A DNA stretch of 64,000 bases from Oculina patagonica (taxonomy: Eukaryota): the NCBI RefSeq assembly GCF_052425735.1, contig NC_135761.1:52266001-52330000 (forward strand), written 5' to 3'. Below, piece after piece: positions 26,601-36,100 of the stretch (position 1 is its first letter; each line of letters opens with the position of its first letter). The position numbers and the translations under genes were made by a program. The notes beneath the pieces were generated by a model. The model did no database searches and was not told where the DNA came from. It saw only the letters and a program-made list of their open reading frames with translations.

Positions 26601-29600
26601 CCCCATGAGACTGTACAAGGAACAAACTTGTTAGCTGAACATTATTGAATTCTGAAAGTTATAATAATAGCCTACCACAAAACAACATAGGATCATAGGA
26701 AGTGTTTCCAACAAAAACTTAAATAAATTTACCCTGTTAATATCCAAAAACTTGTGTATAAGTATCAGTACTGTAGTTCTAAACAATTTCAACCTGCATT
26801 GTTAAGTGACTTATAAACATTTCACATCAATCAGCCTTGTGGCTTTAATAATATTAATTTTATCATTGCTAATTAATCTAGCTGGGATTATTAATAAATA
26901 ATCTTTTTTAAATAAATGAATGTGTGTCCAGCAGTAGCAATGAAATATATATATGATAATGCAAATGCGGCCTTACACTACTGAAGACCTGAAAAAATTT
27001 TTCAGGCTCTGAGCGGGAGTCGAACCCACGACCTTTGCGTTGCCAGTGCAATGCTCTACCACTGAGCTATCAAAGCCACATGAGAGCGGTCGTATATGGG
27101 TAATCCCTTTATGGTGGACATGATACTCGGCCCAAGTATATGTGAAATAAATGAATGTGTGTCCAGCAGTAGCAATGAAATATATATATGATAATGCAAA
27201 TGCGGCCTTACACTACTGAAGACCTGAAAAAATTTTTCAGGCTCTGAGCGGGAGTCGAACCCACGACCTTTGCGTTGCCAGTGCAATGCTCTACCACTGA
27301 GCTATCAAAGCCACATGAGAAAAGGGATTACCCATATACGACCGCTCTCATGTGGCTTTGATAGCTCAGTGGTAGAGCATTGCACTGGCAACGCAAAGGT
27401 CGTGGGTTCGACTCCCGCTCAGAGCCTGAAAAATTTTTTTTCAGGTCTTCAGTAGTGTAAGGCCGCATTTGCATTATCATATATATATTTCATTGCTACT
27501 GCTGGACACACATTCATTTATTTCACATATACTTGGGCCGAGTATCATGTCCACCATAAAGGGATTACCCATATACGACCGCTCTCATGTGGCTTTGATA
27601 GCTCAGTGGTAGAGCATTGCACTGGCAACGCAAAGGTCGTGGGTTCGACTCCCGCTCAGAGCCTGAAAAATTTTTTCAGGTCTTCAGTAGTGTAAGGCCG
27701 CATTTGCATTATCATATATATATTTCATTGCTACTGCTGGACACACATTCATTTATTTCACATATACTTGGGCCGAGTATCATGTCCACCATAAAGGGAT
27801 TACCCATATACGACCGCTCTCATGTGGCTTTGATAGCTCAGTGGTAGAGCATTGCACTGGCAACGCAAAGGTCGTGGGTTCGACTCCCGCTCAGAGCCTG
27901 AAAAATTTTTTCAGGTCTTCAGTAGTGTAAGGCCGCATTTGCATTATCATATATATATTTCATTGCTACTGCTGGACACACATTCATTTATTTCACATAT
28001 ACTTGGGCCGAGTATCATGTCCACCATAAAGGGATTACCCATATACGACCGCTCTCATGTGGCTTTGATAGCTCAGTGGTAGAGCATTGCACTGGCAACG
28101 CAAAGGTCGTGGGTTCGACTCCCGCTCAGAGCCTGAAAAATTTTTTCAGGTCTTCAGTAGTGTAAGGCCGCATTTGCATTATCATATATATATTTCATTG
28201 CTACTGCTGGACACACATTCATTTATTTCACATATACTTGGGCCGAGTATCATGTCCACCATAAAGGGATTACCCATATACGACCGCTCTCATGTGGCTT
28301 TGATAGCTCAGTGGTAGAGCATTGCACTGGCAACGCAAAGGTCGTGGGTTCGACTCCCGCTCAGAGCCGGAAAAATTTTTTCAGGTCTTCAGTAGTGTAA
28401 GGCCGCATTTGCATTATCATATATATATTTCATTGCTACTGCTGGACACACATTCATTTATTTCACATATACTTGGGCCGAGTATCATGTCCACCATAAA
28501 GGGATTACCCATATACGACCGCTCTCATGTGGCTTTGATAGCTCAGTGGTAGAGCATTGCACTGGCAACGCAAAGGTCGTGGGTTCGACTCCCGCTCAGA
28601 GCCTGAAAAATTTTTTCAGGTCTTCAGTAGTGTAAGGCCGCATTTGCATTATCATATATATATTTCATTGCTACTGCTGGACACACATTCATTTATTTCA
28701 CATATACTTGGGCCGAGTATCATGTCCACCATAAAGGGATTACCCATATACGACCGCTCTCATGTGGCTTTGATAGCTCAGTGGTAGAGCATTGCACTGG
28801 CAACGCAAAGGTCGTGGGTTCGACTCCCGCTCAGAGCCTGAAAAATTTTTTCAGGTCTTCCGTAGTGTAAGGCCGCATTTGCATTATCATATATATAATC
28901 TTTTTTAAATTTATGCATTTTTTAAAATTTTGCTTTTAACTACGTGTATTTCCTGGTTGATTATAAACGTAAAGTGTCTCAGAGCTACTGTCTCAGAGAA
29001 ATATTTCATCAGATCTTGGGAAGGGATCCCAGATTTCATAACATCCAAAGTGCAAAAAACCCTAAAGTTCTTACCCCTTTTTGTTTGAGAAGATTAGAAA
29101 AGTCCAATTTTCACTTTACCCCCTCCCTCTCCCCTCTCTTCTCCTCATCCTACTCCCCTCTTTGAACTTCTCTGCCTTTACCACTAGCTGTCTATCGTAC
29201 ACAGTTCACCATTAAATACATTTCAAAACACATATGGTCACTAACTTGTAAAACTTCACCAACTAACTCCCCACCATGTCTATTGCTGTTTTCATCAAGC
29301 TAGGAGTAAAAAAGGCATTATTATTGTCATATTATGAATATATGTGGCTTTGGGCCTGGAAGAATATGTCAACCTAATGTAGACTTCCATTTCCCTTTTA
29401 ACCCATGCCAGGTTTGCAGATTATTTGGATAAAGCATTTTATTTAGCAATAATTATCCCAGTTGGATTAATTCACTTAATTAAATATCACTCTGGTTACC
29501 ATGAAAGTAATGCATTTTGGCTAAAAATGCAGAAGCCACAGAAAGCTAGCTCGACCGTACCCCCTGCAAACAGGGGACAAAATCCACTTCCTTTCCGGGT

Positions 29601-30163: not shown

Positions 30164-33100
30164 ATGGCCTGGGTTTATGTCACATCAAAGAAGAATGCCC
30201 AAAAAGCAAAGTAAGTCATGAAATGGCTAGAATGGTGCAAAAGCTATTTACGACCAAACTACTAGGTCCACTAGACTGCTGAAGTTTTGCTTTAAGCCAT
30301 ATATTTTTTTATTTTTATGGATTAAATGGATATAACTTATCAAAATTATCTTCCTAATCCAGGTGGTAAACATATTCAGATTATGTTATCTTTTTTTGAA
30401 AACTGTAACTGAAACCAGCAGTGTATGAGATATGGAACAGAGGGGGTGAGGAGGGGGTGGTTTAAGGTCAGTTGTAAAGACCCGTGACAGGTCTGGTGGA
30501 TTTCCCCTTGTCAAGATCCTAAGATCCTTACTTCCTCTGTCCCCACTCCAATTGTTGGATTGTTGGAACAGAAAGGGAATCCCCTTTATCACTCTCACTT
30601 TACCATCACTTTTTTTGTTCTGTGGAGAAAGTGGAGGGGGATGTGGGGTCTGAACCTCCCACCTCCTGTGCCTTTTACTCTACACAGCAGTCAAACGCCG
30701 TGCGTGTGTGCAGTTCCTGCGCAATTCCCGCCAAATTCTCCATACAAAGTCTTCAACTTTCCGAAAGCTTTCGCTTAAAGCCAAAAGGTTATGCCCTCCC
30801 TGGAAAGTTAAGGTTTATACGCTGCTTATGAATTGGAAATTTGATAACTGATCTCCACTGAGTTTCCTGGCTTGAAATTTTCTTTCACCATACTATTTCT
30901 ATAACAATTTCTTACCAATGTTTGCACACTTTGGAGTCAAATTTAGATAAGAGTTCATCCATTTCCTTGTTAAATGACGATTTATTCGAGCATAACAAAT
31001 CCGAATGATGAACGACTACAAATAACTACACGTGAGGTTTGACCGGGCTAGTCCCAGTCTCTACTTGACATGACATGACACGTCCGGGCTAGTCCCAGTC
31101 TCTATAAAGGTTGACCACATATTTCTCTATCTCCCCCCAAGTCTTTAGTGTTCCTTGCAATTTTAACAGTGCATAGAGTTGTCGGTAAAGACTGATAATA
31201 ACAAAACAATGGAGTATATATAACAGTGTGCATAGTTCAAGTTCATAGTTCAATTTTTCCTTTCTTGTTGTAGTCCCTGAGCCTCTGTAAAGCTAAGGGG
31301 ACTTTCTTCTTAGCGGGGCCTGTGGCTGGGCTGGCTTCAGGCAAAACTGGTGCTGGGGTTGCTTCAGGCAAAACTGGTCCTGAGGTAGCGGCCGGTTGTG
31401 GTTCTGTTCCAGGGGGTTGTGGTATCGCACAAATCCCTGCTTTTGTGGCTCAGGGCTGCTGGGTTTGGTGGTTCGGCTGCATTGGTAGGCTGGTTTGTCG
31501 GAGTCGGGGGTCTTGGTGTGGAGGGTGTGGCTTTGACTGTTGTACCTGCAGGTCTGAGATCATCACTTAGTAGGCGAGGTGGGAGTCTGGCCTGGACTGG
31601 TACATACTTGCGGAGGAATTTGCGGTTTCTGAGTGTCATTCTTCCAGAACCATCAACACGTGTGATGTATTGGTCGAATTGTTTTACTTCCCCGTGATGA
31701 CCCCTATCTTGTCCCACCGCGTTGGGTGGGGTCCGGTCTGGTTCTGGATTCTGACATGGTCCCCTACGGCTAGGGGAGGGAGCCTTTTGGTGTGCTCAGC
31801 CCACCTCTCTGATGCTTGTATGTGGCGGTTTCTCAGGGCTTCTTCCCTCAAAGCGAGGGTGTCACGCCATGTTGGGTGTGGGATGTAGCGCCCAGGGATG
31901 ACAGGTATGAAATCCTTGATAGGTTTTCCGAAGACACATTGTGCAGGGGATAGCTTGGTGTTTGGGTTGGGGGTGTTACGGTACTGCAAGATGGCCTGCT
32001 GGAATGCGTTGGTGTTAAGGTTGCCTTGTGGGTCTGTGTTATTTGTGATTAGCCTCTTGACGGTTTTCACCCCTATCTCAGCCCTGCAGTTGGAGTGTGG
32101 GAATGCAACGGACGAGAGGGGATGGTGTACCCCCCAGTCTTTCAAAAGCTGCTGGGTGGCGTGTGCATTGAACTGTGGTCCTCCATCGGTGGCGCATTCG
32201 TCTGGGATGCCGTATGTGGCAAAGGTACGTCTAAGGCATTCGATAAGGCCAGCAGAGCCTTCGCGTCCTCTTTCGACGATGGGCCAGTTGGAGTATCTGT
32301 CCACTATGAGTAGTGAGTAGGTAATTGACGCCTTTGTGCTGAAAATAATCAGCACAAATGCATTGGAATGGGTATGCTGGTGCCAGTTTTTATCCTAGAG
32401 CTTCATAGTCTTGTGGGTGGATGGAGACGTTAAGCGAGATGTGTGGCTGTGGCTTTGATGCTCGTCGGACCCAGCAATCATTCATGTTGTTGTATAGGTG
32501 ATGGTCCAAAGCAATACCGTAGGTGGCCTCGTGGTCTTCCCTGGCGACGCTGCATAGGCTGTCGAAGATGGCGCCTTCCGCTTGTCTGTTCGTGCTGGCG
32601 GTGTTTGACAATCCTGGCTGGGGCAGCTTGTTGGTGCTCTGGCATGCTGTTGCAAAGTGGTTCTGGCGGCCACATAGTCGACAAATGGTGCCGAAAGCCG
32701 GGCACTCTTGCTTTCGTATTTTGGCGGAGGTTTTGTGGCCATGGCCTAGTTTACCGCAGTAATGACAGGGCTCGCTGTTGAGTTTGTTGTTAGGTTTGTC
32801 ATGAGGCTTTCGACTGGGGTTCTGCTGCTTGCGGTATTGACTTCGCATTGCCTCCGCGCCTTGGGTGTGAAGGAGGCGCCCTGCCGACCGCTTGCCAGAC
32901 TCTTTGGCCTCCACATATTGTAAAACTTCTTCCAATGTCATGTCTTGATGTTTCTCCCCGAGCAGGTCTAATTGGATTTCGTCATCCACCAGGCCTCGGG
33001 TGATGACATCTCGAAGGACGTTTTCCGTGATGTTGACGTCTTTGTCACAATCAGGGCATTTGACGAGAAATTTACATACACCGGCTTGGCCGCGGAGGCG

Positions 33101-36100
33101 GGCACAGAAGTTCCTTATCGTCTCATCTCTATCTTGCCTCATGTTGTGCAGTTGGACCCTGGCCACCATGGCGTTTTCTTCTCTGACTGCGAGCTTTTTA
33201 ATTGCCTCTAGGACTTCCTCTACCGTTTTGTTGGTCAAGGAGCCGCCTGCATTGCGTGTCAGGTCTTTCCTCAGTTGTTCTTCGCAACATTCGAGGAGTT
33301 GGATCACTTTGTCCTTGCCTTGTACCTTCATTGCCTCAGCGTAGTCCGTCCAACGTGTCATGAAGTATGACCACTCTTCGCTCATTCCAGCGCTCGAAAT
33401 TGTAGGTCGGCGAACTTTCTCGATCCTCGCGCATGGACGGAAATAAGTACAGCAGCTAGCTCGTCTGCGACGTTGCCGGTCTCATAGACACACTCGGGGA
33501 AGGGGCACTTGTGTTTCGGCATCGTTTTGGCCAGTCGAAAGTCACGTGGGATTGAAGAATTCGCTTGCGGTAAAATCCAAGATGGCCGCCATTACGTTTC
33601 GCCGACGTTTTCGTCTCGTAGTTCGCCGATTGTCCTCGTTAATGGCTTGTTTTTCCGCGAGATGTTTCTCTTGTGGGTTTCCAAAGGCTGTAGTCGTTCA
33701 TCATAGATAAGAGTTCATCCATTTCCTTGTTAAATGACGATTTATTCGAGCATAACAAATCCGAATGATGAACGACTACAAATAACTACACGTGAGGTTT
33801 GACCGGGCTAGTCGCAGTCTCTACTTGACATGACATGACACGTCCGGGCTAGTCCCAGTCTCTATAAAGGTTGACCACATATTTCTCTAAAATTCTCGAG
33901 GCGGCGAAGACCGGAGATGACATCATTTTTGCGTTTGGCGCTGTGAACTTTTACTTTCGCCTCCTGTATTTTTTCTCCCGCCTCCCACCCCTTTCCATAG
34001 CCATTCTCTCCTCTTTGTCCCATATCTATTGTGAAATATATTGAAATGTTGTGAAATTTTACTTGTAGTCTCCCGGATCCGACCACCTTAGGAGTCCTGC
34101 TTCCTGCCTTCTTTTCTCCCGCTTCCTGCCCCTTTCCCCCCCGACCCTTCCCCTGTCCCCCTCCACAAGAAAGGTCCCAGGAGAAAGACACCTTTACCCC
34201 CCCCCCCCCCACTTTGAGATCCCCCGGACCTTGCACAGATCGTGTATACATACTTGACACACACTTAATCAATAATGTTTTTTCTTTGCCAGGAAATGTT
34301 TGGAGGAGAAAGGATATTATGGTAAAGAAAGAAAAGTGGCAAGGTACACAGAAGAGGAAGTAGCGATTCCAATCAAACAAGGACTGGCTGAACTTTTAAA
34401 AAATGAAATTACAGGAGGAGCTGAGAAATCTTTGTTACTTTCCATTGAAGGGAGGATTGAACAAGGTGGTGAACATGCAGTTAATATAAGACAACACAAA
34501 GTATCCCCCCAAGAAAAACTAAAGCTTGCTATTGAGAACTTGTTACAAATGAAAAGTGTGACATTTGATGGGCTCTTACAAAAGGATATTCCTCATCACT
34601 GGGAGCAGCATGGAGACCTCATTCTATTACCAGAGAATAGCTTCACTTTGGACAAATGGAAACTTTTTGGTGAGGAGCTATGGCAAGTTGTCGCAAAGAG
34701 TTTAGGTGCAGCCAGACTTGCCAAGAAATCAACTATAAACAATGATGGTTTTAGAACTCCCAAAGTGAGCCTGCTTCTCGGTGATAATGGATGGGTGACT
34801 CACACTGATAATGGTATAAAGTACACCTTCGATGTCACTAAATGCATGTTTTCTTCAGGAAATATAACAGAAAAGATCCGAGTTGGAAATTTTGACTGTA
34901 ATGGTCAAACTGTTGTTGATCTTTATGCGGGCATTGGTTACTTTGTTTTGCCGTATCTTGTCCATTCTAAAGCTGCCATAGTTTATGCTTGTGAATGGAA
35001 TGAAAATGCTATACAAGCTTTGAAGAGAAACCTGCAGTTAAATGGTGTTGATAAACAGTGTGTCATATATGAAGGAGACAATCAGAAGGTAACAAGTAGA
35101 CTATTAAAGTATATTTTGTTTTATACATGTAGCTTATAGCAATAACCAGAGAGTGGTTACTTTCCTAATCACCTTCATGTTGGTAATTGTACAGAACATT
35201 ATGGGTGAGTCTTCTTTCATGCAGACAGTCTGTCGTCTGTCTGTCTGTCTGTCTGTCTGTGTATCTGTGAGTCTGTTTGTCTGTCAGTTGGTTTGACAAT
35301 CAGAGAAATAGTCAATCAAGGTACATGTATGAATCAGTCAGTAGGCAGGCTGTCTAGCTGATAGTCATTCAGTCAGCTTTTTAGATTGCCAGATAATTAG
35401 ACAACCAACTAGTGAGATAATCAATAAGACAGTCATTCGGTCAGTCTGTCAGTCATTCATTCAGTCAGTCAGTCAGTTACAGAGTCAGTCGTTTGGTTGG
35501 ACGGTTCAGTGTTAGGTCAGTCAGCCAGTCAGTCAGTCTCGCATCTAATGAACCATGTCTTCTTTGGTTTAAAATCACTTTGACCTGTCCCAACTATTTT
35601 TTTTAATTTAGTTCCCTCTTCAAGGAGTGGCAGATCACGTCAATCTTGGCCTCATCCCATCTAGTGAGGCTGGGTGGCCTGTGGCTTGTGCTGCACTGCG
35701 CTCTGACAAAGGAGGCTGGCTGCATGTACATGGCAATGTTACGTCAGGTCTAACACACAGTGAAAGAACAGTTTCTATGCTATCTTCAACAGAAACATCT
35801 TTCTTAACTTATGTAACAAAGAATCCTAGCACAGCAAGCTTCCAATCTCCTTTACATTGCTCTGAAGTTGCAGCTAGCTGTGACCATTCTCCCGTAGAAA
35901 ACAATGAGATGCCTTCTTGTAACAAGAAAATGAAGGCAGAGTGGTTAGACTGGGGCAAGTATGTGTCGCAAACTATGTTGCAACATCTGAAAAAATCACA
36001 CGACAGCCAAAACTGGAATGTCCATATAAGGCATATTGAACACGTCAAGTCATATGCGCCTCACATTGATCATGTTGTGTTAGATGTGGAGTGCCGTCCT

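Follow-up and report, generated by a model that had tools for sequence, protein, structure and literature searches.

Self-priming of reverse transcription is established for the LTR retrotransposon Tf1 and has been proposed for Tj1 (PMC4600332). In Tf1 and Tf2 of Schizosaccharomyces pombe and in Tj1 of S. japonicus, the primer-binding site (PBS) adjoins the 5' LTR, and its complement lies further upstream, in an LTR segment thought of as the mRNA's 5' terminus. None of these elements has a tRNA-type PBS, and RNase H cleavage of the duplex has been proposed to release the primer (PMC4600332). On the strength of PBS-LTR complementarity, self-priming has also been predicted for Maggy, Skippy, Cft-1, Boty, Grasshopper and Afut1, for the vertebrate sushi group (sushi-ichi) and for the plant element Tcn1 (PMC6934838, PMC6317226). 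Nor is the prediction confined to Tf1/sushi, as it has already been made for the plant Copia elements TAR, Houba and Osr-1 (PMC6317226).

Here we analyze a retrotransposon in a 64,000-nt stretch of the Oculina patagonica genome (the window, to which plain position numbers refer). A preliminary description of this DNA had read the element as self-primed, with a PBS complementary to its own LTR and not to a tRNA. We conclude that this non-autonomous copy arose by deletion from a Ty3/Gypsy (Metaviridae) retrotransposon, and that reverse transcription in its family is most likely self-primed in the manner of Tf1.

RESULTS

Structure of the window element

The whole element occupies positions 30944-33889 on the minus strand, as do all the features described below; it is 2.9 kb long, internally deleted, and bounded by LTRs of 186 bp. 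The 5' LTR (TAGAG...ATCTA) lies at 33704..33889, and the 3' LTR, its direct repeat, at 30944..31129. A perfect 5-bp target-site duplication, AATTT, stands beside both LTRs, at 33890..33894 on the 5' side and 30939..30943 on the 3' side. The LTR pair has 1 mismatch in 186 positions (33814 versus 31054), and this near-identity points to a fairly recent insertion. The termini are TA...TA, not TG...CA, with the 5' LTR ending in ...TTATCTA. Within the LTR, an AATAAA motif at 33741..33746 is, by motif and position, the probable polyadenylation signal. The polypurine tract, ...AAAGACTTGGGGGGAGA (31130..31147), adjoins the 3' LTR, with its final letters, GGGGGGAGA, directly against it; every relative carries this motif ahead of its own 3' LTR.

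The Gag region extends over 32390..33522, with the original ATG at 33522, and gives a weak PNMA-type Gag match (E 0.0014). Compared with a 5.7-kb copy elsewhere in the genome (G000:C9:1455732-1461465, hereafter the C9 copy), the frame is broken in the Gag N-terminus by a deletion of ~50 nt. The remaining open reading frame (33385..32390) encodes 331 aa, with a CX2CX4H motif as well as a single full CCHC knuckle (32683..32642). Beyond Gag, at 31364..32355, there is a remnant of the integrase core and C-terminal region in two overlapping frames (rve match, E 7.8e-9), with no chromodomain. Alignment to the C9 copy places an internal deletion junction at 32385..32386, at which ~2.6 kb is gone; this deletion had escaped notice in the preliminary description. 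The same alignment finds the window copy devoid of protease, RT, RNase H and the integrase zinc-binding domain. Because the window copy runs from Gag straight into the integrase core, it cannot itself supply protease, RT or RNase H. With ~2.6 kb missing, it is a non-autonomous derivative, presumably mobilized in trans.

Classification and copies in the host genome

The C9 copy (locus L017), which is near-full-length and lies on another chromosome, encodes Gag-PR-RT-RH in one frame and integrase in another, and matches the Pfam families RVT_1, RT_RNaseH, RT_RNaseH_2, Integrase_H2C2 and rve. The PR-RT-RH-IN order and the Gypsy-type RT_RNaseH and Integrase_H2C2 matches identify the family as Ty3/Gypsy, and its 5-bp target duplication falls within the 4-6 bp expected for that group. 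The best match among solved structures is Ty3 Gag-Pol (E 6e-42), which supports assignment to Metaviridae. Family copy number is low in the 529-Mb host genome. The same genome contains related families at 84%, 55%, 38% and 30% RT identity.

The lack of a chromodomain after the integrase, noted earlier for the window copy, holds for more complete elements. Indeed, Pfam finds no Chromo domain at E<=0.01 in the C9 copy and none at E<=1 in the full-length relatives P0069, P0044 and P0010, and there is none in the precomputed Pfam lists of the best 120 relatives. Among the nearest neighbors in the ESM Atlas, those with names are called 'K02A2.6-like' and 'Ty3-I', and none bears a Tf2-type name.

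Complementarity between the PBS and the LTR

The PBS, TGATGAACGACTACA, occupies 33689..33703, directly following the last base of the LTR. Read on the element strand, 33703..33689 is the exact reverse complement of 33780..33766, a 15-nt segment at LTR positions 110-124 with the sequence TGTAGTCGTTCATCA, which we regard as the putative self-primer and, presumably, the 5' portion of R. The last LTR base adds a 16th base pair to the helix. The AATAAA motif (33746..33741) begins 20 nt downstream of the complementary segment. All of the coordinates first reported for this perfect match proved right, as did the absence of TGG from the PBS and the spacing of about 20 nt to AATAAA.

An anchored complement as long as that of the window copy was produced by none of 2000 LTR shuffles, and the chance expectation for a 15-nt complement is 1.6e-7 (~172 positions x 4^-15). 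The C9 copy likewise has a perfect 15-nt complement (16 bp). An older host copy (C4:36724288) has mismatches on both sides of the helix, resembling CpG-site decay. When the window sequence is folded singly, the 5' end pairs with the PBS (z = -4.8). The window LTR contains no TATA-like motif ~30 nt upstream of the proposed transcript start.

Covariation in relatives from other animals

A search with RT-RH returned thousands of relatives. Identity is 73-95% among the best 120, which count among them proteins of Nematostella vectensis, Actinostola, Diadema antillarum, Mizuhopecten yessoensis and Batillaria attramentaria. Elements of the family are 5.2-5.7 kb long and encode ~1600 aa. The preliminary description had suggested asking whether the PBS and its LTR partner covary across related families. 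For this comparison we used the window element and four relatives from other assemblies (L081, L082, L083 and L085; 76-92% RT-RH identity). In L082 (92% identity, LTR of 158 bp), the PBS TGATGGACGACTA pairs with LTR positions 85-97 (13 nt); where its PBS has A>G in comparison with the window element, its LTR has the compensating T>C. In the Nematostella copy L085 (87%, LTR of 132 bp), the PBS TGATAAAGA pairs with LTR positions 64-72, with 9 contiguous pairs only. The PBS of the Diadema element L081 (76%, LTR of 125 bp), TGAACACGGTAT, pairs with LTR positions 53-64 (12 nt), and that of L083 (76%, LTR of 130 bp), TGATGACACTGAACT, with positions 49-63 (15 nt). The PBS sequences of both L081 and L083 are unrelated to that of the window element, and each is complementary to its own LTR. 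The suggested comparison thus came out positive: four relatives have different PBSs, and each matches the LTR of the element that carries it.

The geometry is also constant. The PBS starts at base 1 after the LTR in all four relatives, and in every element 60-67 nt separate the end of the LTR partner from that of the LTR. The implied U3 is only ~50 nt in L081 and L083. Across the five elements there are 9-15 contiguous pairs, equaled by 0-5 of 2000 shuffles. All five have the termini TAGA(G/C)...(C/T)TA, as fixed by target duplications, and canonical TG...CA termini are absent from every one; the duplication is 5 bp in the window element and in L081, L082, L083 and L085 alike. The LTR pairs of three of the four relatives are 100% identical, so the arrangement belongs to recently inserted copies.

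We then aligned the R-U5-PBS region of the five elements (107 columns). In a helix of 16 pairs, 91% of cells are paired, compared with 28-49% in controls with the partner displaced by 1-3 columns, and double, compensatory changes occur in 11 of the 16 pairs; none of 500 shuffles reaches the observed values. This helix is the sole consensus structure predicted by RNAalifold. The four pairs nearest the LTR/PBS border are invariant in the five elements, and in all of them the primer segment is followed in the LTR by TT (TCA|TT). Complementarity, anchoring at the LTR/PBS border, constant geometry and covariation are thereby seen across five elements, none with a tRNA-type PBS.

Comparison of the PBS with host sequences

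The PBS starts with TGA in 5/5 elements and never with TGG, so that no pairing with a CCA end is possible. A check against tRNAs, which had also been suggested, was made through Rfam and the host genome. The element has no match at E<=1 in Rfam, tRNA included. In the 529-Mb host genome, the exact 15-mer occurs only within copies of the family. Matches with one mismatch are as frequent as those of a reversed control, and of the 17 such loci examined, none lies in a tRNA gene.

Distribution of the signature

In a maximum-likelihood RT-RH tree, sampled from the relatives found in the present analysis, all elements that bear the signature fall in one clade (support 100/99). Sister families at 48-59% RT-RH identity (L088, L089, L091 and L093) show no clear anchored complement; their sequences are old, tandem, chimeric or truncated. 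L093 (52%) and L091 (48%) are old copies, with LTR pairs 96% and 93% identical, respectively, and have no anchored complement longer than 6 nt; in both, the LTR end ...TCGA is followed by TGCyCTCTT. L089 (49%) has an 11-nt complement 31 nt upstream, in a tandem array in which the LTR end is not independently fixed, and the contig of L088 (59%) is chimeric and opens with sequencing adapter. Among the others, L090 (40%) is without LTRs, the fetched DNA of L086 (Mizuhopecten) contains no LTR pair, and L087, a short Logan contig, starts within U5. The nearest sampled outgroup, an element of the crab Portunus (39% identity), reads ...CA and then TGGCGCAG, a tRNA-type PBS. At the level of sequence, the putative self-priming signature is confirmed for the crown clade only.

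Fold-back insertions

At two other host loci, a complete LTR with its 15-nt PBS leads into an LTR in the opposite orientation, running from position 125 to 1, with the switch exactly at the 15-mer. The first (C12:13203602-13203911) ends exactly at the LTR terminus on both sides and is flanked by a 5-bp duplication, CAAAT; the precise LTR ends and the duplication indicate that it was inserted by integrase. The second (C14:20240426-20240666) is older and partly deleted. In their order, U3-R-U5-PBS-inverted U3, these loci look like snapped-back plus-strand strong-stop DNA. The 3' PBS end of such a strand would anneal to the LTR segment and be extended to the end of U3, and two snapped-back strands could then form a duplex with two U3 ends usable by integrase. 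The fold-backs show that the PBS and the LTR segment meet as DNA during reverse transcription; priming from RNA is a separate claim.

DISCUSSION

A model for priming

From the covarying complementarity to the element's own LTR, the lack of a tRNA-type PBS and the fold-back insertions, all of which favor the self-priming originally proposed, we infer the transcription start, the RNase H cut and priming itself as follows. The genomic RNA would start at LTR position 110 or slightly before it. The ~15 nt at its 5' end would fold back over an R/U5 loop of 60-67 nt and pair with the PBS adjoining U5. The RNase H of the element would then cut the RNA after the invariant UCA and before UU, as TCA|TT hints, and from the freed 3'-OH, synthesis across U5 and R would yield minus-strand strong-stop DNA. 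Later steps of the cycle would be as in Tf1. Plus-strand strong-stop DNA would copy the primer, so that the PBS of the new copy would be rewritten from the LTR segment. Such rewriting in each cycle would produce both the perfect complementarity of young copies and the free drift between families.

Alternative explanations

Could the complementarity in the window be a chance inverted repeat, or a local rearrangement without function? Short inverted repeats are frequent in general, and nothing else speaks for this reading, whose probability we consider negligible. The 2000 shuffles without an equal, the presence of the complement in the independent C9 copy and the covariation in four further elements refute a chance repeat. 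A more serious alternative is that a host RNA (a tRNA half, a tRNA fragment or another small RNA) primes reverse transcription, and that the complementarity serves circularization, packaging or masking of the PBS. Fragments from within tRNAs do serve as primers in Copia-type elements (PMC6317226), the comparison with host sequences covered Rfam families and loci within one mismatch of the 15-mer, so that tRNA-fragment matches of <=10 nt may exist, and the position of the transcription start is an assumption. However, with a host primer the PBS should be conserved and should not covary with the LTR, and between families of different hosts the PBS differs almost wholly, yet always matches its own LTR in the same geometry. 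Moreover, TGG is never the start of the PBS, the 15-mer and its checked near matches lie outside tRNA genes, and Rfam gives no match. Priming by a host RNA is therefore improbable.

Granted self-priming from the LTR, its origin can be read in two ways. The family may be an offshoot of the Tf1/sushi chromoviruses that has lost its chromodomain, in which case no independent origin is needed. Mechanism and anatomy are as in Tf1 and Tj1 (PMC4600332), loss of a chromodomain is conceivable, and the present tree is without Tf1/sushi references. Against this stand the missing Chromo match in the C9 copy, the three full-length relatives and the 120 Pfam lists, the weakly PNMA-type Gag with its zinc knuckles, the TA...TA termini and the canonical CA|TGG tRNA-type PBS of Portunus, the nearest sampled outgroup (39%). 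The best structural match, to Ty3 Gag-Pol, the absence of a chromodomain and the ESM Atlas neighbors, 'K02A2.6-like' and 'Ty3-I', likewise argue against membership of Tf1/sushi, and we regard such a derivation as rather unlikely. It is quite possible, although we would stop short of calling it probable, that a chromodomain-less Metaviridae lineage with TA...TA termini, very short LTRs and 74-95% RT-RH identity across cnidarians, echinoderms and molluscs evolved Tf1-style self-priming independently, leaving LTR fold-backs inserted by integrase as a diagnostic by-product. Were the lineage separate from Tf1/sushi, the trick would have more than one origin among Gypsy elements, in line with the suggestion made for Copia TAR in plants.

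Comparison with known systems

Self-priming entails no dependence on a particular host tRNA, and would suit a family that is nearly unchanged across phyla. The fold-back insertions, for their part, would be a natural record of a side reaction of reverse transcription, and could serve to mark self-priming elements in genomes. Snap-back self-priming is familiar from retroviruses, as the minus-strand strong-stop DNA of HIV-1 folds on TAR. Common to both cases would be a strong-stop DNA that anneals to a complement within itself and is elongated into a dead-end hairpin. In the present family, in contrast to HIV-1, it would be the plus-strand strong-stop DNA that folds, the complement is the pair of putative self-primer and PBS, and the products were inserted into the genome, with a target duplication.

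Two other animal lineages resemble the family in part. Steamer-like elements of bivalves are also marine-invertebrate Ty3/Gypsy elements with short LTRs, a single Gag-Pol ORF and cross-phylum relatives; one of them, MchSLE1, has a tRNA-Asn PBS, a length of 4.8 kb and an ORF of 4134 bp (PMC11046912). The present family, at 5.2-5.7 kb, ~1600 aa and with an LTR-complementary PBS, is set apart from them by this description, and we rejected identity on the type of PBS. Troyka is another lineage of animal LTR elements with non-canonical LTR termini, in that case CG...CG, with 3-bp duplications (PMC12440569). Identity with Troyka was rejected as well, in view of the TA...TA termini and 5-bp duplications found here. 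LTR finders will overlook or mis-score this family if they demand TG...CA termini and a PBS that matches a tRNA.

A literature search found no report of self-priming in an invertebrate, chromodomain-less Gypsy family. The Gypsy elements of Tf1/sushi type for which it has been predicted are chromoviruses, and TAR is a Copia element, whereas the present family is Gypsy without a chromodomain. The Tf1 primer, in the work of Levin (1995/1996), is reportedly 11 nt long; the duplex described here is 15-16 bp at most. In contrast to Tf1, Tf2 and Tj1, the present family inhabits marine animals, lacks a chromodomain, and has LTRs of 125-186 bp with TA...TA termini and zinc knuckles in Gag. What it adds to the mechanism known from Tf1 is a TA...TA family common to several phyla at high identity, together with integrated LTR fold-backs.

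LTR fold-back insertions

Integrated LTR fold-backs are present at two loci of the host genome, C12:13203602-13203911 (positions 603-912 of locus L019) and C14:20240426-20240666 (locus L020). Both have the same layout, in which a full LTR and the 15-nt PBS are followed by an inverted LTR running from position 125 back to position 1, and at both loci the junction is the PBS/LTR complementarity itself. The C12 fold-back is flanked by a clean 5-bp duplication, CAAAT, and its arms differ at 2 of 124 positions. The C14 fold-back, in which the PBS has one mismatch and the U3 repeat has collapsed in the inverted arm, is older than the C12 copy. A tRNA-Ala(GGC)-like gene is carried by a 235-bp unit that forms a tandem array of nine copies, two of them inverted, at window positions 26898-28910; this array is without relation to the PBS.

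Structure of the family

All family members have LTRs with the termini TAGA(G/C)...(A/T)T(C/T)TA (window 33889/33704 and 31129/30944; related elements L081, L082, L083 and L085 from other assemblies). The LTR ends are thus TA...TA, with boundaries fixed by 5-bp target duplications. TG...CA termini are near-universal among LTRs, and the family would escape standard LTR finders that require them. Downstream of the integrase is a proline-rich tandem repeat with units like PEATPAPVL, located in the 5.7-kb C9 copy at the C-terminus of the integrase ORF (L017:1033-1300); the C9 and window copies carry unequal numbers of units.

The window copy lacks approximately 2.6 kb of pol (at 32385-32386) and has a broken Gag N-terminus (33385-33522). 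Despite these defects, its two LTRs are identical but for one base and its PBS is perfect, which suggests that it was mobilized in trans by a complete element. The host genome also contains at least 14 copies of a different Gypsy family with 38% RT identity (e.g., C3:9932541, C4:6368586, and C7:17112106). Judged from their identical scores and uninterrupted 1431-aa frames, this second family looks recently active.

Relatives in other phyla

Among the best 120 RT-RH relatives (P0001-P0120), identity is 74-95% among the sea anemones Nematostella and Actinostola, the sea urchin Diadema, the scallop Mizuhopecten and the snail Batillaria. LTR pairs are 100% identical in three fetched elements among L081-L085. 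In L089, a TARA metagenome scaffold, a more distant relative (49% identity) is repeated in tandem every 5861 bp, with at least two and a half copies present. The Illumina/Nextera adapter sequence at the start of L088 (L088:1-75), a contig from a 59%-identity sister family, is an assembly artifact. That the RT-RH sequences are so alike across phyla suggests that the family may have moved between them by horizontal transfer, as has been reported for Steamer-like elements.
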